From: Heteronotia binoei
Taxonomy: Eukaryota
DNA: 64,000 nt
Direction: 5' to 3'
NCBI RefSeq assembly: GCF_032191835.1
Contig: NC_083227.1
Span: 24,180,001-24,244,000 of the forward strand
Part shown: positions 2,824 to 63,037 of the stretch, piece after piece
How positions within the stretch are numbered: position 1 is the first letter of the stretch
Layout: every line of letters begins with the position of its first letter
Made by a program: the position numbers and the translations under genes
Notes under the pieces: model-generated
What the model was told of the DNA's origin: nothing
Seen by the model: the letters and a program-made list of their open reading frames with translations, nothing else
Databases searched by the model: none

Positions 2824-3540
2824 CTGCTTCTCCTGCCTCAAGAACTCCTCAGCCAGGGCCACTGCCTGGGAACAGCTCTCAGGACCACTCTCCCTCACCC
2901 GGCTCTGGATCTCCGGGGGCAGGATGCTCAGCAGTTGCTCCAGGATCAAGAGCTCCAGGATCTGCTCCTTGCTGTGTTTCTCCGCTCTCAGCCACCCATG
3001 ACACATTTCCCGCAGTTGGCTGTAAGCCCCCCGGGGCCCCTCAGCCTCCTGGTAGCAGAAATGCCTGAACTGCTGACGCTGCTTCTCCTGACTCAGGGCT
3101 TCTGTTCGCAAGATGGCTGCCTTCACCTTCCCATAATCCTCTCTGTCTCTGGCATCCAGACAGTTATAGGCCTGCTCAGCTACTCCACTGAGGGCCGGCA
3201 GGAGTCGGGTCGCCCACTCTTCCTGGGGCCACTGACAGGCTTCGGCCACTTGCTCAAAGGAAGCCAAAAAAGTCTTGGCATCATTCCAGGGTGAAGGTTT
3301 CTCTGGTAAGGGGGAGATTCCCCATGGAGAGTGAGAGGACTCCAGCGTTCTGAGGAACTCCTGCCACTGGACTTCCCACTCCTCAAGAGAAACGAATCCC
3401 TCCCCTGCAAAATTCATTGGATGTCCTGTTCTCTTTTGCAGGATTTCCCTGATACTCCCAGCCTGGAGAACATGAGGGGCTACTCCTTTCCCTTCTGATA
3501 CTTCCCCTAATTTGGGACATGTGGGAGTCTCCTTCTCCAT
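2824..3540 (-). CDS. SCAN-ZF gene A, first coding exon: extended (capsid-NTD-like) SCAN domain, 239 codons
   Basis: MEKETP...[15 protein letters not shown]...[57 protein letters not shown]; acceptor at 3627-3628, CAG|GTGAGG donor at 2822-2823. Confidence 0.9.
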
Positions 3541-3902: not shown

Positions 3903-4045
3903 NNNNNNNNNNNNNNNNNNNNNNNNNNNNNNNNNNNNNNNNNNNNNNNNNNNNNNNNNNNNNNNNNNNNNNNNNNNNNNNNNNNNNNNNNNNNNNNNNN
4001 NNNNNNNNNNNNNNNNNNNNNNNNNNNNNNNNNNNNNNNNNNNNN
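3903..4045. other. Assembly gap (run of N)
   Basis: About 143 N inside a hAT-type MITE in intron 1 of gene A. Confidence 0.95.
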
Positions 4046-13102: not shown

Positions 13103-13855
13103 TCATGTGTGAAATACAAGAGAAGATCTTGTCCCAGGCTGAGTAGATGTATGGTCTCTTCTCATGTGGATTCTCTGATGCTGGTGAAGGTATGCCTTCT
13201 GGCCAAATCTCTTTCCACACTCTGAGCACTGAAATGGTTTCTCCCCTGTGTGGCTTCTCTGATGATGTTCAAGCTGGGATCTCTTAAGGAAGCTCTTTCC
13301 ACACTCCATGCATTTATATTGTTTTTCTCGTGAATGAACTGTTTCATGGCTTTTAAGGTTTGAGAGAAAACAGAACCCCTTGCCACACTCTGAACATTTA
13401 TGTGGTTTCCCCCCTGAGTGCATACTTTGATGGATAACAAGGTTACCCCTTTGGCGGAAGCACTTTCCACACTCGGAACAATCATACAGCTTCTCCCCTG
13501 TGTGGATTCTTTGGTGTTTTAAGAACTCTGCTCTGCGAAGAAAGCTCCTTCCACACTCTGAGCACTCATGCGGCATTTTCCCACTGTGCGTTCCCATATG
13601 TATATTATACTGAGTTTGGTTTAATAACTTCTTTTCACATATGGAGCATTTATACGGTTCCATCTCCACATGAATCATATCACAGACATCCCCATCTTGG
13701 AAAGGAATAGAATCATTCACCTTCTCCAACATGGCTTCCCTTCTGTGTTTTGAGTCCCCCTCGATTCTTGAAGTTTCCTTTAAACTCTTCATTCTTGACT
13801 TTATCTGGTGACAGCTGACGCAGTTCCTCGTCTTCCTCATTCTCTTGATCATCCC
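13103..13855 (-). pseudogene. Orphan C2H2 zinc-finger last exon, 6 fingers, with a frameshift in the spacer
   Basis: Six CxxC...HxxxH fingers with TGEKP-like linkers. The spacer GDDQENEEDEEL matches the last exon of gene D but shifts frame near 13730. The upstream intron is replaced by a MITE. Confidence 0.8.
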
Positions 13856-13860
13856 CTGCA

Positions 13861-14092
13861 CCAAATTTTCAGTATAGCATCCAGTGCCTCTCCCCAAAAT
13901 ACTCCCCAAGTTGCAAAAATATCAGACCAGGGGGTCCAATTCTATGGAAGGAAGGCATTTAAAAAGGTGTGCAGTCCCTTTAAATATGATGGCCAGAACT
14001 CCCTTTTGAGTTAAATTATGCTTATCACACTCTTGCTCCTGGCTCCACCCCAAAGTCTTCAGGTATTTCTTGAACTGGACTTGGTAACCCTA
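13861..14092. mobile_element. Truncated AGGGTTGCC-type MITE abutting the orphan ZF acceptor
   Basis: Matches the internal sequence of the 5256-5780 element; ends GGACTTGGTAACCCTA. Confidence 0.75.
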
Positions 14093-18627: not shown

Positions 18628-19568
18628 CTAAGAGTTCTCCCCTGTGTGGACTGTTTGATGCTTCTGCAGTTGTGCTGTCCGAGTAAACTTCAGTCCGCAT
18701 TGTGAGCATTTGTAAGGCCTCTCCCCTGTGTGCACTCTTTGATGCACAGTGAAGCTAATGCGGTGACGGAAGGCCTTCCCACACGCTGAGCACTCGTAAG
18801 GCTTCTCTCCCGTGTGGATTGTTTGATGCTGCCGCAGGGTTGACACCCGAGTAAACTTCTTCCCACACTCTGAGCACTGATATGGTTTCTCCCCGGTGTG
18901 GATTGTCCGATGCTGCTGAAGGTGTGCCAGCCGCCTGAACCTCCTTCCACACTCTGAACATTTATAAGGCCTCTCCGCTGCATGTGGTGTTTGTTGCATG
19001 GGAAGACTTACACAGTCACTGATGCTCTTTTCACTTTCTGCGCCCAGAGATGGTTTCTCTCCTGTGGGAATCATCTGATGCTCTTTGGAGCCTGGCTGCC
19101 CACTGTAGCTGTTTTCATACTCTGGAATTTTTTGAGGTTCTTCCCCATTGTGAATTCTTTGATGCCACGTAAGACTTGTCCTCCAACTGAAGCTTTCTCC
19201 ACACTCCGAGCAATGATATGGTTTCTCTGGTGAAGAAACCTGTTGGTGTGAAATAAGAGAGGTGCTCTGTCCGAAGCTCTGTCCAAACTCCGCACATGCA
19301 TTTTGTTTTTTCTTGACATGGAGTCTTCCATAAGCACTGTGGCCTCCATTCTTCCTCTTTTGGGTTGCCTTTCCCTCTCGGACAAGGATTTCCTGGAATC
19401 CCCCAGCTTGGCAAGGAATGGGATTATCCCTGCCCTCCACTGTGTGGCTTCCCTCCAGCCGCTTTTGTCCCTCTTGATTCCCAAAGGTTCCTTTCCAGTC
19501 CCCATTCTTGACTTTGTCCAGTGTGAATGCCCGGAGTCCCCCATCCTTTTCACTCTCCTGCACTTCAC
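18628..19568 (-). CDS. SCAN-ZF gene B, last exon: spacer + 5 intact C2H2 fingers
   Basis: TTCAAACAG acceptor (19569-19570), phase 1. Exons 720+121+938 nt give 593 codons, then TAG at 18628-18630. Confidence 0.88.
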
Positions 19569-20884
19569 CTGTTTGAAGAAAGGCAGAGCAACCCAGTTAC
19601 CACCGTGAAAAGAAGTCAAGTCTCAAATCATTCCCTCCATAGCTGATCTGTGCGCATTTTGTATCTTTTGCCAGAACTTTCTCCTGCTTCAGTCGTGCAG
19701 TTGGTCATACCTCTTGCCTAGCCAGGCCCACCCAAGGAGCAAGTTCTATTTGTTTCCTTCCTCTCCTCAAATGGGGACCACATACAGGGCTCTTTTTTTG
19801 GTTAAAACAATTTTATTTGGTAACATATGGTAACAGATTATATTTCTTGCATCATTAATAACTTCTTTTATCTATCCCATATACAGGGCTCTTTTTTGTA
19901 GCAGGAACTCCTTTGCATATTAGGCCACACACCCCTGATGTAGCCAACCCTTCAAGCAGGACTTTTTTTGAGCAGGAACGCACAGGAACGCAGTTCTGGC
20001 AGGCTTAAGAACATAAGAGAAGCCATGTTGGATCAGGCCAGTGGCCCATCCAGTCCAACACTCTGTGTCACACAGTGGCCAAAAAAACCCCAAGTGCCAT
20101 CAGGAAGTCCACCAGTGGGGCCAAGACACTAGAAGCCCTCCTACTGTGCCCCCCCACCCAAGCACCAAGAATACAGAGCATCACTGCCCCAGGTTTGGTG
20201 TCAGGGTGTGTGACCTAATGTGCAAATGAGTTCCTGCTGGGGTTTTTTCTGCAAAAAAAGCCCTGTGTGATGTCAGGAGGTGTGGCCTAATATGCAGACG
20301 AGTTCCTACAAAAAAAGCCCTGCCTCCACGAGCTTACAGGACTCTCAGTACAGGGCCTACTGCATGCTCCAGGAGGATTATTTGCAAAGGTGTTCCTGCT
20401 ACAAAAAGGCCCTGCTCCTATTTATTTGAAAGAGGTGGGGAGGAGGGATTCAGACACTTCCCCTCCACACCTGGGATGCCACACATGGTTTCGTTCTTTG
20501 ATATTCATGATTCAACATGAAGCATTATTGTAAATTGCAGACCCATCAAAGCCTGCTGTTACACATAAAACTGCAGCAAATTTTGGACCCAAATCAAGCA
20601 TTCTTTTGCTTTCAATTAACAAGTGTGGAAGGAGTTCAGTTCCTCTGAATGTCGGGGTTCCCCTCAGTCACCATGGCTAGTGGCCAGTGATATCCATGGA
20701 GGATAAGTCTGTCTAATCCCTCCTTAAAGCTGTTTATTCCTGTGGCCATCGCTACATCCCCTGGCAGCAAATGCCACATTTTAATCACTCTCTGTGTAAA
20801 GTAGTAGTTTCTTAAACTGGCTCTTAAATGCTATTCATATCAAATGTTATTCATATCAAATGTTATTAATATCAGGCCCAATGC

Positions 20885-22349: not shown

Positions 22350-22833
22350 TGTCAGAACTCAAGAACTTCAAACGGATCCCATACTTAGTTACAAAGCTAG
22401 GATTTTATTGAGGAGAACTAGGTGCTGGAAAAGGCAAGATAACAGTAATGGCGAGAGCCAGCATCAGCTTGATTTTATACACGTAAAGCAAACATCTCAC
22501 AAAGCCACAATTCACATTGTAGGGCGCAGCTGTCTTCTCACCATCACTATCAGTAGAGAGGATGCCTCCCTACTCCGAAGGCCATGCTGTTCGGCTTCAA
22601 AGGGTCCCAGTGTGAGAATGTGCAGAGACAAGACATAATTCATTCTACAGCCCCAAATATTTTGGATACCAGTGGGGCAAGGTTAATTACTATTCAGGCA
22701 CTCTGGGTTAAGCAGAGGTTACAACATGGAGTCAGTTTGGTTCAGTAACAATACAGCTCCAAGCCACAATAAAACTACCATACAGCATTGGTCACATTAT
22801 AGAGGACCAGCAGCAAAGATACAAGTTCTGACA
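22350..22833 (-). repeat. 3' LTR
   Basis: 484 bp; no mismatch to 27934-28417 found by eye. Confidence 0.95.
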
Positions 22834-22850
22834 TACTGCCCCCCCTAAGC
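22834..22850 (-). promoter_or_regulatory. Polypurine tract (TTAGGGGGGGCAGTA)
   Basis: Purine run immediately before the 3' LTR on the sense strand. Confidence 0.85.
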
Positions 22851-25800
22851 GCCCCCTCCCGCGGGGCCGACCTTGGGCTTGTGCGGGTACAGTAGGTGAA
22901 ACTTTTTCAGCAGTTGCGGTGCCACTACATTCTGAGACTCGACCCACTCGTCACAGCTCGGGGGGAAGTGTTTCCACCTGATCAAATAATACAGTTTCCC
23001 CCGTTTGACTCTGGAGTCCAGGATCTCCTGGACTTCATGGTGACTCTGACCCCTCACTGTCGTCGGAGGGGGCGGTGGGGCCCTGGGATGGAAGGACGTA
23101 GCACCAGGGTCTTTCCGAAGCAAGCTGCAATGAAAAACAGGATGGATCTTACTTAGTGATTTGGGTAGTTCGAGTTCTACCGTTACTTTATTTATCACCC
23201 TTTTGATTTTGAAAGGTCCTAGGAACTTCAGTGCAAGTTTGCGGCAGGACTGGGGAAGGGGAAGGTTCTTTGTCGACAGGAAAACTGTATCCCCCACCTT
23301 CAGATCCCACTCCGGAGAGTGTTTTTTGTCAAACTGTTTTTTGTAGGCTTTTTTCGCTTCCTCCAGGTTTTCCTGAATTCCCTTCCAGCCTTCACGAAGT
23401 CCCTCCCACCATTGTTGGCATGATGTTGGCTGGGATGGGCTGGCTGGGAGGGCGAGCGTAGGGAACGGCTTGCCCTCGTAACCATTGATGATTTGAAAAG
23501 GGGAGGTTTTGGTTGAGCTATGGAGGCTATTGTTGTAGCCGTATTCTGCAAAAGGGAGGAGATCCACCCAGTTGGACTGTTGGAAATTAATGAAACAGCG
23601 GAGGTATTGTTCTAGAAGGCCATTAACCCTCTCCGTCTGTCCGTCCGACTGGGGGTGGTAGGCAGAACTCAGTCCTTGCTCAATGCCAGCTAGTTTGCAG
23701 AACTCCCGCCAGAAGTTGGCAACGAACTGCGTTCCGCGGTCACTAATGACCTTGTCTGGGAATGAGTGTAGGCGTACAATGTGAGTGAAAAAGAGCTGGG
23801 CAAGTTTTTTGGCTGTAGGTAACTGTTTGCAAGGAATGAAGTGAGCCTGCTTCGAAAAGGTGTCGACTACGACCAAGATGACTGTTTTGCCCTGTGAGGG
23901 CGGGAGCTCTACAATGAAGTCCATGGAGACTACCGACCAAGGTCGGGTGGCTGTAGGGAGGGGAACCAGGTGGCCCGGAGGTTTGCCCCCCCTTCGTTTT
24001 GCCATGAGGCAAGTGGGACATGAGAGTACAAATTCTGAAACATCTTTTTTCATTTTCGGCCACCAAAATTGGCGGGTGAGCAAGTTGAGTGTTTTGACAT
24101 AACCAAAGTGGCCGGCCAAGCGGCTTGAGTGGCAGCGTTCCAAAACCTCCTTCCTGAGGGGATCGGGCACATAGATTTTTTCGTTATGTAACCAGAGCCC
24201 GTTCTCGGCCTTGACCAAGTTGGGGGGGCGGTCAGTTTCTTGTTTGTACTCTGAGAGGAACCGAGAAAGTAACTCTAAGTCCGGTGGATTGGTCTGTTTA
24301 CCGGAGCGGGTGGTGACCCCCCCCGCGATGGCTGAGGGGGAAATTAGTGAGTCCACCACCTCCTCCCTGAGACTGTCGTGTTGGGGCAGGCGGGAAAGGG
24401 CGTCCGCTAAAAAGTTTTTTGAGCCCGGAATGTGTTTCAACACAAAATCAAACTTAGCAAAGAAGCCTGCCCACCGGATCTGTTTTGCAGTCATTTTGCG
24501 ACGCCCCGTGAGGGCTTCCAGGTTTTTGTGATCGGTCCAGATTTCGAAGGGGACTCTCGCTCCTTCAAGCCAGGAGCGCCAGGTTTTTAAGGCAAACATG
24601 ACTGCAAATGCCTCTTTGTCCCAGACCGACCAGTTTCTTTGTTCATTGGAAAATTTCCTGGAAATATAGGCACAGGGTCGGAGCACCCCATTTTCTCCCC
24701 TCTGCATTAATATGGCTCCTACAGCGGCGTCGGAGGCGTCGCATTGGACCACAAAGGGCTTAAGTTCGTCAGGATGAGCCAGCACGGGTTCGGAGGTGAA
24801 GAGGCGTTTTAGCTCAGTGAAAGCTTTTTGACAGTCAGGCGTCCACGTTAGGCGTGCGCCGGGTTTTTTAGCCTCGTCGCCCTTCCCTTTCGTTTTGAGG
24901 AGTTCTGTAAGAGGGAGCATGACCGTGGCGAACCCCTTTATGAAGTCGCGGTAAAAGTTAGCGAACCCGATAAAACTTTGTAACTGCTTGCGGGTTCGAG
25001 GGGGTTCCCAGTCTAACACCGCTTGGACCTTTGCGGGGTCCATGGACAATCCCTCCCCCGACACCCGGAAGCCCAAGTAATCCAGTTCGGTCTTGTGGAA
25101 TTCACATTTTGACAATTTGGCATACAGTTTGTGTTTACAAAGGGTGCTTAACACTTTTCTGACCAAAGGCACATGAGACTTTAGATCTTGTGAATAGATA
25201 ATGATGTCATCAAGGTACACCACCACCCCCTTGAACAGGAAGTCCCGCAGCACTTCATTAATAAAGTTCATAAAAACACCCGGGGCTCCCTGTAGCCCAA
25301 ACGGCATGACAAGGTACTCAAATTGTCCCAGTGGGGTGTTGAAGGCTGTCTTCCACTCGTCCCCCTCTTTGATGCGGACGCGGAAGTAAGCGTCTCGGAG
25401 GTCGAGTTTGGTAAATACTTTCCCCTTTGCTACGGTGTTTAATAAGTCCTTTATCAACGGGATCGGGTAGGCGTTGGACATGGAAATCCCGTTTATCGCA
25501 CGAAAATCTGTGCAAAGCCTAAGCGACCCGTCCTTCTTCTTTCGGAACAGGACAGGGGCGGCATGGGGAGCTGTGGCGGGTCGAATAAAGCCACGCTTTA
25601 GATTTTTGTCCAAAAACTTTCGGAGTTCAGCTTTCTCCGCCCAACCCATGGAGTACAGTTTCGCTTTGGGAAGCTGCTGCCCTGGGATTAGCTCAATGGC
25701 ACAGTCTGTAGGGCGGTGGGGCGGTAGCTCATCCGCTTCCTTCTCGCTAAATGCCAGCTTTAAGTCTCGGTACTCCTTGGGGATGGAGGCGACTTCCTCG

Positions 25801-26306
25801 AGTGTGAGGCACGCCCGCATGTTTTGGGGGGGAGCGTGCGGCCCCCACTCGGGGCGCCAGTGGTGATGCTCGCACCTCCAATCCGGGAACCGGACGAGCT
25901 GTTCCTCCCACCTTATGTCGGGTTGGTGGCGGGCGAGCCAAGCTGAGCCTACTACCACGTCGAAAGAGCAGGAGGGGGCGATTACGAAAGTCTCAATTCC
26001 CCAATGCTCCTCAGTCCCTACCGGGACCGCCTGAGTTTCTAAAGTACATGGTTCCCCTCTCATGGGCCCCCCGTCCATTTGCTGGAACTGCATCGGTTGC
26101 GGCAGGGGCGAAGTGGCTAATCCCAGCGCCTCAACTAGGCGGGGGGTGATCAAGTCCCTGTTACACCCTGAGTCGATTAGCGCTCGGGCGTGCATGAATC
26201 TCTTAAGGTTCGGGTTAAGGAGGGTGACGGCCATAAAAAGTAAACCCCCAGTTGCTCTCACCGTGAGGAGTGCCGGCTGTTGTTGGACCTGCTTTGCGGC
26301 ACCCAT
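22845..26306 (-). CDS. pol: Pol polyprotein: protease, RT, RNase H, integrase, chromodomain (reached by -1 frameshift)
   Basis: LIDSG protease; MPFGL and YLDD RT; CDAS/TDH/ADALSR RNase H; H-H-C-C, MDFI/SDRG/GQTE integrase; GPF motif; EVQEILDSR...YLIRWKHF...EW chromodomain. 1153 codons open. Confidence 0.95.
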   Translation of the reverse strand: MGAAKQVQQQPALLTVRATGGLLFMAVTLLNPNLKRFMHARALIDSGCNRDLITPRLVEALGLATSPLPQPMQFQQMDGGPMRGEPCTLETQAVPVGTEEHWGIETFVIAPSCSFDVVVGSAWLARHQPDIRWEEQLVRFPDWRCEHHHWRPEWGPHAPPQNMRACLTLEEVASIPKEYRDLKLAFSEKEADELPPHRPTDCAIELIPGQQLPKAKLYSMGWAEKAELRKFLDKNLKRGFIRPATAPHAAPVLFRKKKDGSLRLCTDFRAINGISMSNAYPIPLIKDLLNTVAKGKVFTKLDLRDAYFRVRIKEGDEWKTAFNTPLGQFEYLVMPFGLQGAPGVFMNFINEVLRDFLFKGVVVYLDDIIIYSQDLKSHVPLVRKVLSTLCKHKLYAKLSKCEFHKTELDYLGFRVSGEGLSMDPAKVQAVLDWEPPRTRKQLQSFIGFANFYRDFIKGFATVMLPLTELLKTKGKGDEAKKPGARLTWTPDCQKAFTELKRLFTSEPVLAHPDELKPFVVQCDASDAAVGAILMQRGENGVLRPCAYISRKFSNEQRNWSVWDKEAFAVMFALKTWRSWLEGARVPFEIWTDHKNLEALTGRRKMTAKQIRWAGFFAKFDFVLKHIPGSKNFLADALSRLPQHDSLREEVVDSLISPSAIAGGVTTRSGKQTNPPDLELLSRFLSEYKQETDRPPNLVKAENGLWLHNEKIYVPDPLRKEVLERCHSSRLAGHFGYVKTLNLLTRQFWWPKMKKDVSEFVLSCPTCLMAKRRGGKPPGHLVPLPTATRPWSVVSMDFIVELPPSQGKTVILVVVDTFSKQAHFIPCKQLPTAKKLAQLFFTHIVRLHSFPDKVISDRGTQFVANFWREFCKLAGIEQGLSSAYHPQSDGQTERVNGLLEQYLRCFINFQQSNWVDLLPFAEYGYNNSLHSSTKTSPFQIINGYEGKPFPTLALPASPSQPTSCQQWWEGLREGWKGIQENLEEAKKAYKKQFDKKHSPEWDLKVGDTVFLSTKNLPLPQSCRKLALKFLGPFKIKRVINKVTVELELPKSLSKIHPVFHCSLLRKDPGATSFHPRAPPPPPTTVRGQSHHEVQEILDSRVKRGKLYYLIRWKHFPPSCDEWVESQNVVAPQLLKKFHLLYPHKPKVGPAGGGA

Positions 26307-26330
26307 TAAAGCAGGTCGCTGTCGTTTCCC
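26268..26330 (-). promoter_or_regulatory. -1 ribosomal frameshift signal: G GGA AAC slippery site + H-type pseudoknot
   Basis: Slippery heptamer 26330-26324, 6 nt spacer, stem 1 GACCTGCTTT/AAAGCAGGTC, stem 2 GGGTGCCG/CGGCACTC. Confidence 0.88.
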
Positions 26331-27880
26331 GCCGACTCGGTATCGTCCGACTCCTCGGTCGATTCTTCGACTGCCGCCAGGCTGGTGGTAAAATCCTCGT
26401 CAGTCGCCAAGGAAGTGGCGACGGAGCCCCGACTGGGCTCCTTCGATCGGCTGCTCTTCTTCTTCTTCGGGCCCGGGGTGGTTGGCCGCGCCGTGGGTGG
26501 TGTGGATCCCGCTTTCCCAGGGCAGTTAGCAGCAAGATGATTTGGGTCCCCGCATTGGAAGCACTTGCGGGCGGGAGACGGGGTGGAGGTCGTCGGAGCC
26601 TTCTTCCCTTCGGATTTAGTTGGGGTGTGTTTGGCTCCCTTCCTCGCTAGTTGCTGTCTCCTCATCCCCACGTGTTGGAGGTTGGTCTCCACTTCCCCGG
26701 CCAGTTGGATCCAGCCGACCAGCGTGTCGGGCCTTCCCTGACTGTAACAGCGGTCGAGGATGCTCGGATTCAACCCGTTGATGAACGCGGTGTATTTCAT
26801 GACCTCGTTCCATCCCCTCGCTGCCGCACAGTACCCCAGGAATTCGGTGGCGTACTCGCGGGTGGAGCGGTTGCCCTGTTCGATGCGTTGGAGGGCAGCG
26901 ACCGCCTTCTCCTCCCGCAAGGGATCTCCATACTGGCGGAGCATCGCGTGCAGGAACCCTGCCACGGTAGCTAATTCGGGCTTTCTTCCCATGAAAAGCC
27001 CCACATACCATTTGCGGGCCGCCCCTCTCAGTCGAGACGCGATGTGGTACACTCGGCTGGCCTCGGTAGGGTAGTCGGCGCCCCAGTGGGTGAAAAACGT
27101 GTCGCACTGAATAGTAAAGTATTCCACGTCCTCCGGATTCCCATCGAACGTAATCTTCAGCTCTCTTCCCCGTCCCTCGGCCCCTCCTGGCGCTCGCGGC
27201 GCCCCAGGCGGCGGTGCTGGGCCCGGTAGGGCCGGCGGGATCGGACCGGGTAGTGCAGGCGGCGCCGGGGCGGCCGGGGCCCCTGGTGCGGGCGGCGCCG
27301 GCGGTGCCGGGGCGGCCGGAGCCGGCGGAGCCGGAGGTGCCGGGGCCGCTGGGGCCGCTGGGGCCGGCGGCGCCGGGGCAGCTGGAGCCTGCGGGGCGGG
27401 GGCCGGCGGGGCGACAGGCGGTTGCCCCAGTGGCAACACTCCATACGGTATCCCCAGGACCGCGGTTTGCAAAGTGCGGAGCTGGTCGTGGATAGCGCCC
27501 AGGTTCTGCTGCATCTCCTCGGCCATCGTCACGCGGGAACGGTGCACATCGCCGTGGATTTCCCGCACCCAATCGAATAGTTCGTTGCGGAGGGTCCGGA
27601 TCGGGTCTTCCCCCCCTCGGGGCTCCGTGCCCTCCGCCTGGCCCTCGTCGTCGTCTCCTGCCCCTCCTTCGCCCAACATGCTTCGATACCGCTGCTCCGC
27701 GGCGTCGATTGCTGCCGTGGACTTCCGCGGGCTCCAGGTTCGCGGGGCCGGGAAGGCGGCGTCGACCGAGAAGGGCGCTGGAACCTTAATTTTGCGTCGG
27801 ACCCCCGTCACGTTTGGGTCGAGCGGCGGGTCCTCCGATGGGGTGGTGGGCTCTCCGTCGTCTGGTACTTTTGCCGCCAT
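26306..27880 (-). CDS. gag: Gag: Pro/Ala hinge, capsid domain, CCHC zinc knuckle
   Basis: Likely ATG at 27880 (MAAKVPDD). FDGNPE...LRGAARKWY...QGNRSTREYATEF capsid motifs; CFQCGDPNHLAANC knuckle; TAA at 26306-26308. Confidence 0.93.
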   Translation of the reverse strand: MAAKVPDDGEPTTPSEDPPLDPNVTGVRRKIKVPAPFSVDAAFPAPRTWSPRKSTAAIDAAEQRYRSMLGEGGAGDDDEGQAEGTEPRGGEDPIRTLRNELFDWVREIHGDVHRSRVTMAEEMQQNLGAIHDQLRTLQTAVLGIPYGVLPLGQPPVAPPAPAPQAPAAPAPPAPAAPAAPAPPAPPAPAAPAPPAPPAPGAPAAPAPPALPGPIPPALPGPAPPPGAPRAPGGAEGRGRELKITFDGNPEDVEYFTIQCDTFFTHWGADYPTEASRVYHIASRLRGAARKWYVGLFMGRKPELATVAGFLHAMLRQYGDPLREEKAVAALQRIEQGNRSTREYATEFLGYCAAARGWNEVMKYTAFINGLNPSILDRCYSQGRPDTLVGWIQLAGEVETNLQHVGMRRQQLARKGAKHTPTKSEGKKAPTTSTPSPARKCFQCGDPNHLAANCPGKAGSTPPTARPTTPGPKKKKSSRSKEPSRGSVATSLATDEDFTTSLAAVEESTEESDDTESAGNDSDLL

Positions 27881-27920
27881 CGAGCCAAGCCTCCAGTACA
27901 GATAAGCCACGAACAATGGG

Positions 27921-27931
27921 ATTACTGTTAT
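27921..27931 (-). promoter_or_regulatory. Self-priming primer binding site (ATAACAGTAAT)
   Basis: 2 nt downstream of the 5' LTR; no TGG start; perfectly complementary to 11 nt at 28033-28023 in the LTR. Confidence 0.8.
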
Positions 27932-27933
27932 AA

Positions 27934-28417
27934 TGTCAGAACTCAAGAACTTCAAACGGATCCCATACTTAGTTACAAAGCTAGGATTTTATTGAGGAGA
28001 ACTAGGTGCTGGAAAAGGCAAGATAACAGTAATGGCGAGAGCCAGCATCAGCTTGATTTTATACACGTAAAGCAAACATCTCACAAAGCCACAATTCACA
28101 TTGTAGGGCGCAGCTGTCTTCTCACCATCACTATCAGTAGAGAGGATGCCTCCCTACTCCGAAGGCCATGCTGTTCGGCTTCAAAGGGTCCCAGTGTGAG
28201 AATGTGCAGAGACAAGACATAATTCATTCTACAGCCCCAAATATTTTGGATACCAGTGGGGCAAGGTTAATTACTATTCAGGCACTCTGGGTTAAGCAGA
28301 GGTTACAACATGGAGTCAGTTTGGTTCAGTAACAATACAGCTCCAAGCCACAATAAAACTACCATACAGCATTGGTCACATTATAGAGGACCAGCAGCAA
28401 AGATACAAGTTCTGACA
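27934..28417 (-). repeat. 5' LTR with TATA box (28063-28057), predicted TSS 28033 and AATAAA (27993-27988)
   Basis: TATAAAA lies 30 nt upstream of a CA+1 initiator-like site; poly(A) hexamer 40 nt downstream of it. Confidence 0.93.
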
Positions 28418-30209: not shown

Positions 30210-30929
30210 CTGCTTCTCCTGCCTCAAGAGGAACTCCTCGGCCAGGGCCACTGCCTGAGAACAGCTCTCGGGGCCGCTTTCCCTCACACAGCTCTGGATC
30301 TCCGAGGGCAGGATGCTCAGCAGTTGCTCCAGGATCAAGAGCTCCAGGATCTGCTCCTTGTTGTGATTCTCCACTCTCAGCCAACTGTGGCAGATTTCCC
30401 GGAGTTGGGTGTAAGCCCCCCGGGGCCCCTCAGCCTCCTTGTAGCTGAAACACCGGAACTGCTGGCGCTGCTTCTCTCGGTTCAGGGCATCCCTTCTCAA
30501 GATGGCTGCCTTCACCTTCCCATAATCCTGTTTGTCTTTGGCATCAAGACTCTTAAAGGCTTTTGCAGCTTCTCCACTGAGGGCTGGCAGGAGTCGGATC
30601 GCCCACTCGTCTCTGGGCCACCAACAGGCTTCGGCCACTTGCTCAAAGGAGGCCAGGAAGGCCTTGGCATCCTCCCAGGGGGAAGGCTTCTTTGGCAAGA
30701 GGGGGATTCCCCATCTAGAGTGTGGTGACTCCAGTGTCTTTAGGAATTCCTGCCACTGGGCTTCCCACTGTATGAGGGAAAGGGATCCCTCCCCAGCTCG
30801 CTGATCCATCAGATCTCCCGGTGTCTTTTGTAGTAATTCCCTAATACTCCCAGCCTGGAGGACGTGAGGGGATTTTCCTGTTCCCTCGGATACTTCCCCT
30901 ATTGTGGTACCTTGCCCCTCCATTTTCAT
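30210..30929 (-). CDS. SCAN-ZF gene B, extended SCAN exon, 240 codons
   Basis: MKMEGQ...[31 protein letters not shown]...[18 protein letters not shown]; CAG|GTGAGG donor. Confidence 0.9.
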
Positions 30930-39788: not shown

Positions 39789-41065
39789 TCACTCAGGAGA
39801 TTTCTCCTCCATGTGGATTCTTTGATGCTTCCTCAGGGATGATATCCAATTAAACTTCTTTCCACATTCAGAGCATTGGAACAGTTTCTCCCCAGTGTGG
39901 GTCATCTGATGTACCGTGAGGCTAATGCAGTGGCTGAAGCTCCTTTCGCACTCTGAACATTTATACGGTTTCTCCCCTGTGTGGATCCTCTCGTGCTGCT
40001 GAAGGTGGAATGGGGAAATGAATCTCTTTCCACACTCTGAGCACTCATAGGGCTTCTCCCCCGTATGGATGATTTGATGCTGTTGCAGGTGTGATGTGCG
40101 ACTAAAACTACTTTCACACTCAGAGCATTTGTAAGGTTTCTCCCCTGTGTGCGCTCTTTCATGCACCTTGCGGCTTAAGCGGTGACGGAAGGCCTTCCCA
40201 CATTCTGAGCATTTATATGGTTTCTCTCCAGTGTGGATCCTTTCATGGCGTTGAAGGAGGGAACTGAAACTGAATTTCTGCCCACACTCTGAGCATTCAT
40301 AAGGCTTCTCACCAGTGTGGATTCTCTGATGCTGCCGCAGGGTTGACACCCGAGTAAACTTCTTCCCACACTCTGAGCACTGATACGGTTTCTCCCCTGT
40401 GTGGAGTGTCTGATGCTGCTGCAGATGTGATGCCCACCGAAATGTCTTTCCACACTCCAAGCATTTATAAGGTCTCTCTGCTGTGTGTGTTCTTTGTTGC
40501 TCAGTCAGGCTTATGTGGTCACTGACACTCTTCTCAACCTCTGAGCACTGAGACTGTTTCTCTCCTGTTGGGATCACCTGATACTCTTCGTGGTGTGGTT
40601 GCCCACTGTGGCAGTTTTCACTCTCTGGAATTTGGGAGAGATCTTCCCCCTTGTGAATTCTTTCATGCCAAGTAAGAGCTGTCCTCCAACTGAAACTCTC
40701 TCCGCACACTGAGCAATTGTATGGTTTATCTACTGAGTGAATTTCTTGATGTGAAATAAGATTCAAGTTCTGACTTTTCCCAAGCACCACAGTTTCATTT
40801 TTATTTTCCGCTATGTAGATTCTCAGGTGAGTTGTGAGACCTTTATTCCTTCTATTTTGAGTTGCCTTTTCTTCTTGGATTGGAATTTTCTGGAATCCCC
40901 CACCTTGGCAAGGAATGGTTTTATCATTTCTCTCAACATTACCATTTCCATCTTGCCTCTCTAGTCCACCATGATTCCCAAAGTTTCCTTCCAAATCTTC
41001 ATTGTGGACCTTGTCCAATGATAACACCTGGAGTCCTCCATCATTTTCATTCTCCTGTACATCAC
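39789..41065 (-). CDS. SCAN-ZF gene C, last exon: spacer + 9 intact C2H2 fingers
   Basis: TTTCAAGCAG acceptor (41066-41067), phase 1. Exons 711+121+1274 nt give 702 codons; TGEKPY linkers. Confidence 0.9.
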
Positions 41066-41633
41066 CTGCTTGAAACAAAGGCAGAGAGATCTAGTTACCA
41101 CCCTGGCAAGAAGCCAAGTCTCAAAGCTGGCTGTACATTTTATTCCTTTGGGTGGACTTTAAAGAACTTTAAAAGGCCTTCCCTCTTGCCTAGACGCAAG
41201 GAATTCTGGGACTTGTAGTTCTTGAGAACTTGTCACTTCTCCTGGTGCTATATTTTTAGTCTGTCAACATTTTTAAAAAATTTATTAGATTTTTAGTCGC
41301 TTCTCACCCAAAGGGTCTCATGGCAACTAAAAATCCAATAAATAAAAAAATGAAATGATGACAGACTGAAAATGTAGCAAACCAAAGGGCCTCACTGATC
41401 AGAATGTTGTGCGTTCTGATCTCACCCTGCTTCTTACTGGCACTTGCAAATCTCACAAGATTGGACACCCCCTTCTAAGATACCTATCTCTCCATCCCCA
41501 ATGGTAAAGGGGTTGCAACTTGGGCCAACCAGTCCTCCTGGATGCTTGGGCTCCATAGTAAAGTTTACCCACACACAAAGCTATGCTATACTGAATCAGA
41601 CCCTTGATCCATCAAGGTCAGAACTGTCTATCC

Positions 41634-45477: not shown

Positions 45478-46188
45478 CTGCTTCTTCTGCCTTAAGAGGA
45501 ACTCCTCGGCCAGGGCCACTGCTTGGGAGCAGTTCTCAGGGCCACTCTCCCTCACCCGGCTCTGAATCTCTGAGGGCAGGACGTTCAGCAATTGCTCCAG
45601 GACCAAGAGCTCCAGAATCTGCTCCTTGCTGTGTTTCTCCACTCTCAGCCACCCACGGCACATTTCCCACAGTTGGCTGTAAGCCCCTCGTGGCCCCTCA
45701 GCCTCCTGGTAGCAGAAATGACGGAACTCTTCACGCTGCTTCTCCCGGTTCAGGGCTTCCTCTCTCAAGATGGCTGTCTTCACCTTCCCATAATCCTCTC
45801 TGTCTTTGACATCCAGAATGTTGAAGGCCTTCTCTGCTTCTCCACTGAAGGCTGGCAGGAGTCGGGTCACCCACTCTTCCTTGGGCCAGCAGCAGGCTTC
45901 AGCCACTTGCTCAAAGGAGGCCAGAAAGGCCTTGGCATCCTTCCAGGGTGAAGGTTTCTTTGGCCACAGTGGAATTGTCCAGTGTGGCTGAGGGGACTCT
46001 ACTGTCCTGAGGAACTGCTGCCACTGGGTTTCCCATTGCTGCAATAAACTCTCACTAGGTTCCTCTTTAATTACTCCTGGCCTCCTTTGGAGGAATTCTC
46101 TGATACTCCCAGCCTGGAGTACATGGGGGTTTTTTGCTATCCCCTCTTGCATCTCCCCTATCGTGGTGTCTTGACCCTCCATCTTCAT
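45478..46188 (-). CDS. SCAN-ZF gene C, extended SCAN exon, 237 codons
   Basis: MKMEGQ...[31 protein letters not shown]...[18 protein letters not shown]; CAG|GTGAGG donor. Confidence 0.9.
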
Positions 46189-53779: not shown

Positions 53780-54202
53780 ATGGCAGAGCAGGATCCAGAA
53801 GGACCTGGAACTAGCAAAGGAACAAAGAAAAGCCTCCGTCCTATCCAGGCTCAGAGTGGTGCTGAATTCTGGGAAAGAGCTGCCCCAGAGATCCTGACTC
53901 AGGAAACGATGATCCCAAGTGTGCGTTGCCAACGCTTCCGGCAGTTCCGTTATCATGAGGCTGCTGGGCCCCAAGAGGTTTGCAGCCAGCTCCATGAGCT
54001 TTGCAACCGCTGGCTGAAGCCGGAGAAGCACAACAAGAAGCAGATCCTGGACCTGGTGATCCTGGAGCAGTTCCTGGCCATCCTGCCCCCGGAGATGGCA
54101 AGCTGGGTCAGAGGGTGCGGGCCAGATACCAGTTCCCAGGCAGTGGCCCTGGCCAAAGGTTTCCTCCTGAGCCAGGCAGAGAAGAAGAGGCAGGCAGAGC
54201 AG
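53780..54202 (+). CDS. Gene D (SCAN-KRAB-ZF-hAT fusion), SCAN exon, 141 codons
   Basis: MAEQDPEG...RCQRFRQFRYHEAAGPQEVCSQLHELCNRWLKPEKHNKKQILDLVILEQFLAILPPEM; CAG|GTGAGG donor. Confidence 0.9.
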
Positions 54203-55581: not shown

Positions 55582-55785
<204 letters not shown>

Positions 55786-60160: not shown

Positions 60161-60341
60161 GAAATCATCAGTGTGCAAAGCAAGCCTCTCTGATGCAGCA
60201 GGATTTTCAATTGTCCATTTTCGGTACACTTCAAAGTGCAGCAAAAAGAAACTCTAGAAATGTTACAAATGTGAATAGATATTCAAGCGCAGATCAGACC
60301 TCCTTGTGTGGGAGCTAATAGGATCTTTGTCTTTATTCCAG

Positions 60342-63037
60342 CAGGGGATGATCAAGGGAATGAGGACGACGAGGAACTGCGTCATCTGTTGCCAGGTGAA
60401 ATCAGATATGAAGACGTGAAAAGAAGCCTCAGGAATCAAGATGGATCCAAGAGGCAGAAAAGGAGCCACGTGGTTGAGAAGAGTGGCAAAACCATTCCTT
60501 GCCCAAGGGGGGTTTTCTGTGAAGCAATTCACATGATGGAGGAAACATACAAATGCTTGGAGTGTGGAATGAACTTCTCAGATCAGTCCCAATATCACGT
60601 GCATTTGACAATACATCCTGAAAAGAAGACCCATCATTGCTTGGAGTGTGGAAAGAAGTTCAGGTACAGATCGCAGCTCCTTAAGCATCAAAGAACCCAC
60701 ACGGGGGAGAAACCTTTTGAATGCACAGTATGCAGAAAGAGCTTCAGTTGGAGCGGCAATCTTCACCAGCATGAAAGAACCCACACAGGACAGAAACCAG
60801 ATAGCTGCTTAGACCACGGCCAGAGCCTCCCACAGAAATCAGGCCTTTGTCAACACCAAAGGATTCACTCAGGAGAGACGCCGTTTATTTGCTCAGAGAA
60901 TGGATCGACACTCTCAACAGGTAACGAGAATACAGATTTGAGCTCACAGACTGAAACAAGTGAGTCTGGGACTTCTGCTGCAGCCTCTGAAGTCACGGAA
61001 AGCTCATGGCCCAGTTGCTGGACTGTGGAACAGAAAGATAGATTTTTGGAAAAAAACAATTGGTTGTTTTTTTGTGACGCCAAGTTGGGTTGCTCCGTGT
61101 GCAAAAAGATGAGAGGTTTAGAAGGAAAGAAAACTGGAGCGATACGGCTTTCCAGAGAATGGGTAAAATGTTCGGTAACACCATATGGTGACAGCAGGAA
61201 GCAGCAATTAACATCTCTGAGGAAAAAGATTTTTGAACACAGAGAAAGCGGTAATCATAAAGCTGCAGTTAAAATACTTGAAAAGGGGAAAAAACAAAGG
61301 CCCGTAAAAGCAGGTCATCCGTCACTAGAAAGTGAGGAAGAAATCACCAGTAAAGTGTTCCGTACTGTATATAAGTTGGCAAAAAGCAACCAGCCATTTA
61401 ATGATTTTGAAAGTGAAATTGATTTACAAGAATTAAATGGCGTCGACATGGGGACAATGTGGCATTCAGCTAATGCGTGTATAAATATTTTAAATCACAT
61501 TGGCCGTGAAATGAGACGTCTGGTGATCGGAAAGATTATCGACTCAAGGAGTAAAATCTCACTGATAATTGAGGAATCCACTACTGTGAGTCAGGAATCT
61601 GTACTGTTAGTGTACATTCGTACCTACATGAAGGAAATAGGCATGCCAGCCCCTGCAAATCTCTTCATCGCCTTGATGGAGCTGGAAGATGTGACGGCAA
61701 ATGGAATATTCAGCACTTTGATGTCTCAGCTTGAGTCGCTAGGGTTCACTGAAGATTTTCTTAAGGAAAACTTAGTTTCGTTGACCAGTGATGGTGCCGC
61801 AGTGTTGCTGGGATCCCGCGGAGGGGTTTTGAGACTTCTCAAAGATAGATTCCCTGCCGTTGTTTTATGGCATTGTGCCAGCCATCGGCTGGAATTATCA
61901 GTACATGATGTTGTGAGAGAGGTTTCTGGCATCAATAGAGTGCGAGATTTTTTGGACAAATTGTACGTTGTGTATCATACGTCTCTGAAACACGCAAGGG
62001 AGCTCAACTCATGTGCAGCTGCACTCGAGACGGAGATTTTAAAAATAGGAAGGGTTCTTTCCACCAGTTGGGTTGCATCCAGCTACAGGACCGTTTTGGC
62101 CGTCTGGCAGGATTACAAAGCCTTAGTGCTTCATTTGGGAAAAGGCAGATCACAAGGAGGGAGAGGCGGAAAGGGGGAAAGCACGTACGAGGGTCTTCAT
62201 AGAATGATGACGTCGGTTGATTTTATTTTGGAACTTGGGTTGTTTTGTGACACTTTGCAAGAGCTGTCGGAACTGAGTTTAGATTTGCAGGAGAGAAACA
62301 TCGATATGTACAAGGCCCACTGCAAGATTGAGTGTGTTCTTGATGTTTGTAGGCTGAGAAGCACCGCTCCAGGTCCTTATTACAAGGAAGCACTTGAAGC
62401 GGCAGAAAGTCTTCAGTTTAAGGGTGTCCCATTGCGTAAAAATAATAGAGCCGACAACCCACCAATCTCCCCAGTTGTATTCTACGATCAACTTAAAATT
62501 TCTCTTCAGAAAAGACTGCTTTCGGAAGAAGATGTAAACCTGTCAAAGTGTGCGAGAGTCCTGGATTCTGAGACTTGGCCGACAAGCATTAGGGACAACC
62601 CTCTCTTCGGAGAAGAAGAAATACGGACGTTGGCAGGAAGATTTCGGCTCGGTGAAAGAGAAGCCGTTAGAGCCTTCAGGGGCCATCTGAAATTGAGAAA
62701 AGGAGTGCCCAAGGAACTGGCTCAGATTCAGCACACTCTCAATACAATAGCCATTTCCTCCAGCGAGTGTGCAAGGGGATTTTCCCAGATGAACCTGATT
62801 GCCACCCCAGAAAGGTCCTCCTTGTCGATCGAAACACTGCAGAATTTATTATTTATCAGAATGGTCGGACCTCCCTTAACGGGCTTCAACCCAACGTACT
62901 ATGTTAGAAAGTGGTTGCTTCAAGGTCATCAGCCTGCCTTATCGACCCAAAGCGAGGACCAGAAAAGAACAGAAGTAACGGGTGACCTGTCACCATTTTG
63001 GGAACTTTTGGAGGGATTGTCCTCATCAAATGATTGA
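60342..63037 (+). CDS. Gene D last exon: spacer, 3 intact C2H2 fingers + 1 degenerate finger, in frame with a KIAA1586-like hAT transposase-derived region
   Basis: TTATTCCAG|CAG acceptor, phase 1. WPSCWT...WLF...LGCSVC...H...H TTF-type Zn module; IIEEST, TSDGA, HCASHRLEL, STSWVASS and SSECARGFS hAT motifs; 2.7 kb without a stop. Confidence 0.9.

Follow-up and report, generated by a model that had tools for sequence, protein, structure and literature searches.

SCAN has been reported as a dimerisation domain, and the zinc-finger proteins that carry it (SZFPs) form a large class of transcription factors that is still poorly understood and has been studied almost only for the C-terminal half of the capsid from which the domain derives. 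The recent preprint on SZFPs also covers the C-terminal capsid half only (bioRxiv 10.1101/2025.03.03.638093). Human SCAN zinc-finger proteins act on chromatin and bind transposon-derived chromatin. According to the summary of their work in PMC3406341, Emerson and Thomas (2011, J Virol 85:12043) described an extended version of the domain, ESCAN, which was exapted from a full-length Gmr1-like capsid gene near the root of the tetrapods and which, in Anolis, is found linked to zinc fingers. Lizard SCAN zinc-finger proteins were also predicted by Emerson and Thomas to bind Gmr1-like elements, as cited in PMC4592553. The N-terminal lobe of the extended module (the N-lobe) is known but neglected in the literature.

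Here, three genes of this kind, designated A, B and C, are analysed in a window of 64,000 nucleotides from the gecko Heteronotia binoei (NC_083227.1, positions 24,180,001 to 24,244,000). They are further members of the known ESCAN family and not carriers of a new domain, and the extended SCAN of Anolis to which a preliminary description of this DNA referred is the ESCAN summarised in PMC3406341. As ESCAN was published in 2011, existing knowledge of the module is left unchanged. Added here are a fold prediction for the N-lobe, its Arc-N-lobe-like structural neighbours, estimates of selection and a census of the family.

Exon anatomy of genes A, B and C

Three minus-strand open reading frames in the window are paralogous exons of genes A, B and C (Table 1), and their products are 70–75% identical to one another in pairwise alignment. 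All three have the same layout: a disordered tail, a conserved segment of approximately 100 aa and a Pfam SCAN domain. PF02023 is matched only at aa ~152–239 of each exon (E 1e-35 to 3e-38), and Pfam returned no match in the ~150 aa that precede SCAN in exons A–C. The preliminary description had claimed an open, conserved segment of about 90 aa upstream of SCAN, and this is borne out. Conservation begins at W55 and extends to about aa 150 (some 96 aa), and the motif ending ...DYGKVK.AILR is present in the translations of all three exons. When a profile of the upstream part (gene B aa 50–150) was compared to the six-frame translation of the window, only A, B and C were matched, with E-values of 4e-50 to 5e-51. 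As the first 300 nt of intron past each splice donor are saturated and essentially unalignable between the three genes (p about 0.5), the conservation of the upstream segment is not due to chance.

Each exon opens with an ATG and closes, at the same codon, with an identical canonical splice donor, AAGCAG/GTGAGG. The start of gene A was taken as the ATG at 3540; a run of N (3903–4045) lies just upstream of this exon and is crossed by the mechanical open reading frame. The zinc-finger exons of genes B and C are found on the same strand, downstream of the ESCAN exons with their conserved donors. The ESCAN exon of gene A is near the left end of the window, and its zinc-finger exon would fall beyond that end. 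The exons were searched one by one and, in this window, we infer the joins between ESCAN and finger exons. Apart from an unrelated inserted element, no nucleocapsid zinc knuckle, protease or pol was found near exons A–C, which end at the splice donor.

For KRAB boxes, every open frame of 25 aa or more in the window was searched with a single sequence (phmmer), and sensitivity is limited to those frames. Within this search, no KRAB-like open frame was found near A–C on the minus strand; the sole match in the window belongs to gene D. Genes A–C thus appear to be KRAB-less, as had been proposed.

Another C2H2 exon, with six fingers, was found at 13106–13921 (minus strand); neither a SCAN nor an ESCAN exon that could belong to it separates it from the finger exon of gene B. 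In its N-terminal part it is more like the finger exon of gene D than the finger exons of genes B and C, and it may represent a remnant, an orphan gene or an alternative last exon.

Table 1. Coordinates of the ESCAN genes and the comparator gene in the window
Feature	Position	Strand	Evidence
Gene B, first coding exon, 240 codons: tail, N-lobe and SCAN (ESCAN)	30210..30929	-	ORF; ATG and CAG/GTGAGG donor; Pfam SCAN aa 152-239, E 1.4e-35; AF2 model
Gene B, N-lobe, aa 50-150, derived by homology from capsid N-terminal domain	30480..30782	-	AF2 pLDDT 86.5; Arc N-lobe PDB neighbours; hhalign 98.4% to Gmr1-like Gag; dN/dS 0.30-0.39
Gene B, SCAN lobe, aa 151-240, derived from capsid C-terminal domain	30210..30479	-	PF02023; PDB SCAN 3lhr, 1y7q, 2fi2, 4bhx, E 5e-34 to 1e-27
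Gene A, ESCAN exon	2824..3540 (N-lobe 3091-3393)	-	ORF, Pfam, alignment, profile, donor
Gene C, ESCAN exon	45478..46188 (N-lobe 45748-46044)	-	ORF, Pfam, alignment, profile, donor
Gene B, presumed last exon, 5 C2H2 fingers	18631..19596	-	Pfam; finger count; N-terminal part paralogous to 39.8-41.1 kb exon
Gene C, presumed last exon, 9 C2H2 fingers	39792..41090	-	Pfam; finger count; N-terminal part paralogous to gene B finger exon
Gene D, exon with short classical SCAN, no N-lobe (comparator)	53780..54202	+	Pfam SCAN E 4.5e-38; profile match only from position 138 onward; BLASTP vs gene B
Gene D, KRAB box exon, open frame	55582..55785	+	phmmer; PF01352 E 1.5e-22

Gene D and the inserted retroelement

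In gene D, a tail of 47 aa runs directly into SCAN, and neither the N-lobe profile nor BLASTP against gene B revealed a trace of the upstream lobe, in agreement with the earlier view that this gene has the short SCAN only. Together with its KRAB exon, this makes gene D, as judged from its domains, a SCAN-KRAB-ZF gene. Its region at 60275–63034 (plus strand) encodes three C2H2 fingers followed by an open C-terminal extension of ~690 aa. The extension gave only a faint match to the hAT dimerisation domain (E 0.032), and recalls the SCAND3/ZBED-like hAT transposase fusions.

The presumed intron of gene B contains a complete LTR retrotransposon of the Ty3/gypsy chromovirus type, inserted in the same orientation as the gene (22350–28417, minus strand). 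Its 484 bp LTRs (22350–22833 and 27934–28417) are 100% identical, have TG..CA ends and are flanked by a 5-bp target duplication, TCGTT; the element is very young. Its gag is open (Retrotrans_gag, Ty3_capsid, CCHC) as is its pol, where protease, RT, RNase H, integrase and chromodomain follow one another in the standard order and not in the Gmr1 order. The ESCAN profile has no similarity to the Gag of this element, the only retroelement of the window (hhalign probability 1.5%).

Origin of the N-lobe

One gene-model match of the N-lobe profile search led to a locus in the teleost Coilia grayii (L001:12560–15561). At this locus, two ORFs encode a SCAN-like domain and, after it, an aspartic protease, and the next ORF encodes the integrase C-terminal SH3 domain and then reverse transcriptase. 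An integrase placed before RT is the order of Gmr1-like elements (bioRxiv 10.1101/2025.03.03.638093), and since the integrase part precedes RT here, the Coilia element is Gmr1-like. Residues 86–234 of gene B align with aa 181–329 of its Gag ORF over 149 aa, without a gap and with 39% identity (BLASTP, E 2e-33). The N-lobe profile alone matches the same Gag with an hhalign probability of 98.4% (E 7e-15). Taken together, the gapless alignment and the profile match indicate that the N-lobe corresponds to the stretch of a Gmr1-like capsid ahead of the C-terminal domain. By sequence comparison, then, the upstream segment of ESCAN is homologous to the Gag region directly before the SCAN-like capsid C-terminal domain, and the resemblance to the N-terminal lobe of the Gmr1 capsid noticed in the preliminary description reflects this relationship. 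The alignment with the fish Gag does not extend to helix 52–66 or to the N-terminal tail.

In the wider family, tuatara homologues pass the Pfam Retrotrans_gag threshold with a match that extends across the junction of N-lobe and SCAN. Among 48 family members, the N-lobe gave only a marginal Retrotrans_gag match in 2 and an Arc_capsid_dom match in one. Retroelements, namely the LTR element of the window and the fish Gmr1-like copies, were left out of the alignments used for profiles and folding. A sequence search of the PDB with the N-lobe profile returned only InvE (E 0.09), which was judged to be spurious.

Predicted structure

Structure was predicted with AlphaFold2 (AF2) for the whole exon, from an alignment of 48 sequences, and for the N-lobe alone, from 118 sequences. 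In the whole-exon model, the tail (aa 1–49) and a loop (aa 66–81) are disordered and helices are confident from 88 to 239, with helix 52–66 and loop 66–81 being the lower-confidence parts. The N-lobe modelled alone reached a pLDDT of 86.5, with 95–98 in the core. In the PDB, the structures nearest to this model are crystal structures of the N-lobe of human Arc, with TM-scores of 0.64–0.73 (target-normalised) and an rmsd of 2.2–2.6 Å over 63–66 of 65–70 residues. These are followed by PEG10 and retroviral capsid C-terminal domains, which share with the Arc N-lobe a common core known as the 'CA fold' (PMC6525542). The Foldseek E-values of the isolated N-lobe are about 1 and not significant. As such values are expected for a helical bundle of 65 residues, the fold match is supportive and not decisive. 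The model thus supports, without settling it, the view that the N-lobe folds like a CA-type capsid N-terminal domain with the four-helix CA core, and the homology to Gag at the sequence level carries more weight than the fold match. A Foldseek comparison of the N-lobe to the library of viral structures, BFVD, gave no credible capsid match.

When the whole-exon model was compared to the PDB, SCAN dimers ranked first, and the SCAN lobe is 42–52% identical to solved SCAN dimers. Two-lobed capsids came next, with aligned columns that far exceed the length of SCAN: 152–164 for the Arc capsid domain, 187 for PNMA2, 211–237 for MLV and 158 for Ty3 (E 6e-3 to 0.16). From SCAN itself and from these matches over 152–237 columns, the C-terminal lobe corresponds to the C-terminal domain of CA and includes its major homology region. 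The capsid matches have TM-scores of only 0.3–0.5 and an rmsd of about 10 Å, which means that the lobes match and that their mutual arrangement in the monomer model is not capsid-like. In its structural and evolutionary part, the preliminary description of a whole two-lobed capsid holds: of the two outcomes named there as refuting it, lack of a structural match to the CA N-terminal domain and neutral evolution of the upstream segment, neither was obtained.

Selection and conservation

In comparisons between the three genes, the N-lobe has a dN/dS of 0.30–0.39 (Nei-Gojobori); the bootstrap 95% intervals span 0.16–0.69, and Fisher tests give p of 5e-5 to 1e-3. The corresponding dN/dS values of SCAN are 0.21–0.25. 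As the intervals lie below 1, neutral evolution of the N-lobe is excluded. Consistent with this, the mean pairwise identity among 48 lepidosaur proteins is 0.71 in the N-lobe core and 0.69 in SCAN, falling to 0.61 in helix 52–66, 0.35 in the loop and 0.32 in the tail. The N-lobe is under purifying selection and is conserved as much as SCAN.

Synonymous divergence is uneven along exons A–C: dS is 0.25–0.36 in the N-lobe core, 0.28–0.46 in SCAN and 0.8–1.7 in helix 52–66 with the loop. This could be due to gene conversion between paralogues, to constraint on synonymous sites or to small-sample noise.

Family census

A word search with the gene B exon returned 441 proteins at E <= 1e-3. The best 120 of these are nearly all from squamates or tuatara, and both lobes are covered in 114; the closest among the matches listed are geckos (Euleptes europaea with 80% identity, Eublepharis and Heteronotia). 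A profile search with the N-lobe only reached 4136 protein-cluster representatives at E <= 1e-3, of which 660 pass 1e-10 and 170 pass 1e-30. The best 150 of the 4136 are all host ESCAN genes. Among 126 newly returned representatives, SCAN follows directly after the N-lobe in 105, at least two C2H2 fingers are present in 78 and KRAB in 9. Where adjacency is considered, the N-lobe lies immediately next to SCAN in 105 of 106. Long members of the family consist of ESCAN and very large finger arrays, and turtles carry the domain too.

Some family members depart from this layout. In a protein of 1430 aa from Sceloporus undulatus (P0179), ESCAN is followed by a BED zinc finger and a hAT dimerisation domain in place of a C2H2 array, so that the two-lobed module has also been joined to transposase-derived partners. 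In a turtle cluster (P0232; Chelydra, Terrapene, Chrysemys and Platysternon), a single SCAN and the fingers are preceded by ~8 tandem copies of the second half of the N-lobe (RLTPTLSSEAY...DYGK).

SCAN is absent from 20 of the 126 new representatives, and those examined end at or near DYGK (e.g. P0126, P0129, P0130 and P0170). At this point the exons contain a look-alike of a splice donor, AAG/GTGAAG, which is made up of the conserved K-V-K codons (window 30516–30521, with equivalents in A and C). Ten SCAN-less representatives were looked up and are mostly ab initio annotations from Gekko kuhli, Sphaerodactylus and Naja. Because of this origin and the coincidence with the pseudo-donor inside the exon, the proteins are probably prediction artefacts rather than N-lobe-only isoforms.

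Proposed function and alternatives

The reading that we consider probable is that genes A–C are ESCAN zinc-finger (ESCAN-ZF) genes, in which a two-lobed module from a Gmr1-like Ty3/gypsy CA is spliced, without KRAB, to a C2H2 array, with a SCAN lobe that dimerises and an N-lobe that offers a second surface. It builds on the homology to Gag, on the fold prediction, on purifying selection and on annotated homologues in which ESCAN is followed by zinc fingers. The first coding exon supplies a two-lobed module that goes back to a complete capsid, where aa ~85–150, along with the conserved helix 52–66, corresponds to the CA N-terminal domain, and SCAN (aa 151–240) to the CA C-terminal domain with its major homology region. 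Spliced to this exon without an intervening KRAB box, the fingers may recognise specific DNA sites, which would probably derive from transposons, like those of human SCAN zinc-finger proteins. Judging from solved SCAN structures, the SCAN lobe would form domain-swapped homo- and heterodimers among the many paralogues. The N-lobe would provide a second, independently constrained protein-binding surface and, by analogy to the Arc N-lobe, might recruit a partner through a short peptide or make contacts with other N-lobes.

Alternatively, the N-lobe could be without a partner of its own and be kept to stabilise the SCAN dimer or to tune its selectivity, the two lobes forming one larger dimerisation domain. 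The model agrees with this in that the last helix of the N-lobe continues into helix 1 of SCAN (helix 136–159), as does the nearly constant position of the N-lobe next to SCAN (105/106), and short-SCAN genes such as D work without it. However, AF2 folds the N-lobe confidently on its own, the lobe is conserved as strongly as SCAN, and the roughly eightfold amplification of half the lobe in a turtle gene would be odd for a mere packing element, so that this explanation is given a minor share of the probability. It is far less credible still that the exons are decaying Gag fragments of Gmr1-like retrotransposons and not host genes. They are homologous to Gmr1-like Gag, but they lead into neither protease, integrase nor RT; they end at shared canonical splice donors, zinc-finger exons lie downstream, their dN/dS is well below 1 and there are hundreds of annotated ESCAN-ZF homologues. 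On these grounds, an identity as transposon fragments was rejected.

The preliminary description went further and suggested that the proteins build lattices on DNA as capsids do, or enter assemblies of retroelement Gag and poison the particles in an Fv1-like or dominant-negative manner. This is unlikely, even though ESCAN has kept, under constraint, both lobes with which capsids build lattices, shares 39% identity with Gmr1-like Gag, and has among its structural neighbours two domesticated capsids, Arc and PNMA2, that do assemble. Solved SCAN domains, as the titles of their PDB entries indicate, are domain-swapped dimers and not CTD dimers of the lattice type; moreover, the nucleocapsid and protease parts are gone, and human SCAN zinc-finger proteins act on chromatin. 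Co-assembly is also mildly disfavoured by the Gag of the window's only retroelement, which is without detectable similarity to ESCAN, and by the reported depletion of Gmr1-like elements in reptilian genomes (bioRxiv 10.1101/2025.03.03.638093), although another study finds full-length Gmr1 elements in reptiles. More doubtful again are higher-order, capsid-like assemblies in which arrays nucleate on repeated DNA targets, or mix with Gmr1-like Gag, and trap or poison particles. If they did form, ESCAN-ZF proteins would be sequence-guided, capsid-mimicking restriction factors. A similar idea of capsid targeting is already in the literature: Emerson and Thomas reportedly speculated in 2011 that SCAN first targeted zinc-finger proteins to the capsids of retroelements.

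Returning to the reading of A–C as ESCAN-ZF genes with a second surface, the N-terminal half of the module in sauropsids combines conservation at the level of SCAN with a predicted Arc-N-lobe-like fold of its own, and it is found in thousands of protein clusters. These properties make it a constrained, candidate partner-binding domain in a very large gene family of squamates.

Comparison with known systems

The closest described system is ESCAN-ZF of Anolis. As summarised in PMC3406341, it has the same full-length homology to the Gmr1-like capsid N-terminal to tandem C2H2 fingers, is likewise from a squamate and clusters alongside short-SCAN genes; the difference is that the host there is an anole and here a gecko. 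The mammalian-type SZFPs and SKZFPs (e.g. ZNF24, ZNF174, MZF1 and PEG3) also have an N-terminal SCAN and C-terminal fingers, and the SCAN lobe of ESCAN is 42–52% identical to solved SCAN. They lack the N-lobe, however, starting ~45 aa before SCAN, and many have KRAB, like gene D.

Among retroelements, the Gmr1-like Gag of Coilia grayii has a colinear N-lobe and SCAN-like C-terminal domain, 39% identical over 149 aa without gaps. In the element, Gag is followed by protease, integrase and RT, whereas the host genes have an intron and zinc fingers instead, and the fish Gag has no match to ESCAN helix 52–66 or to the N-terminal tail. The capsids of Arc, PNMA2, PEG10 and Ty3 share the two helical lobes, and the ESCAN N-lobe superimposes on that of Arc with an rmsd of about 2.3 Å. 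Here the identity is only 14–19%, and these capsids are free-standing and belong to other Ty3/gypsy lineages. Arc, PNMA2 and Ty3 form capsids, whereas ESCAN is fused to a DNA-binding array and has a C-lobe of the domain-swapped SCAN type. Fv1 of the mouse is a conceptual parallel only, as another host protein derived from Gag; unlike ESCAN-ZF, it comes from an ERV-L-like retroviral gag, is without zinc fingers and binds incoming capsid lattices.
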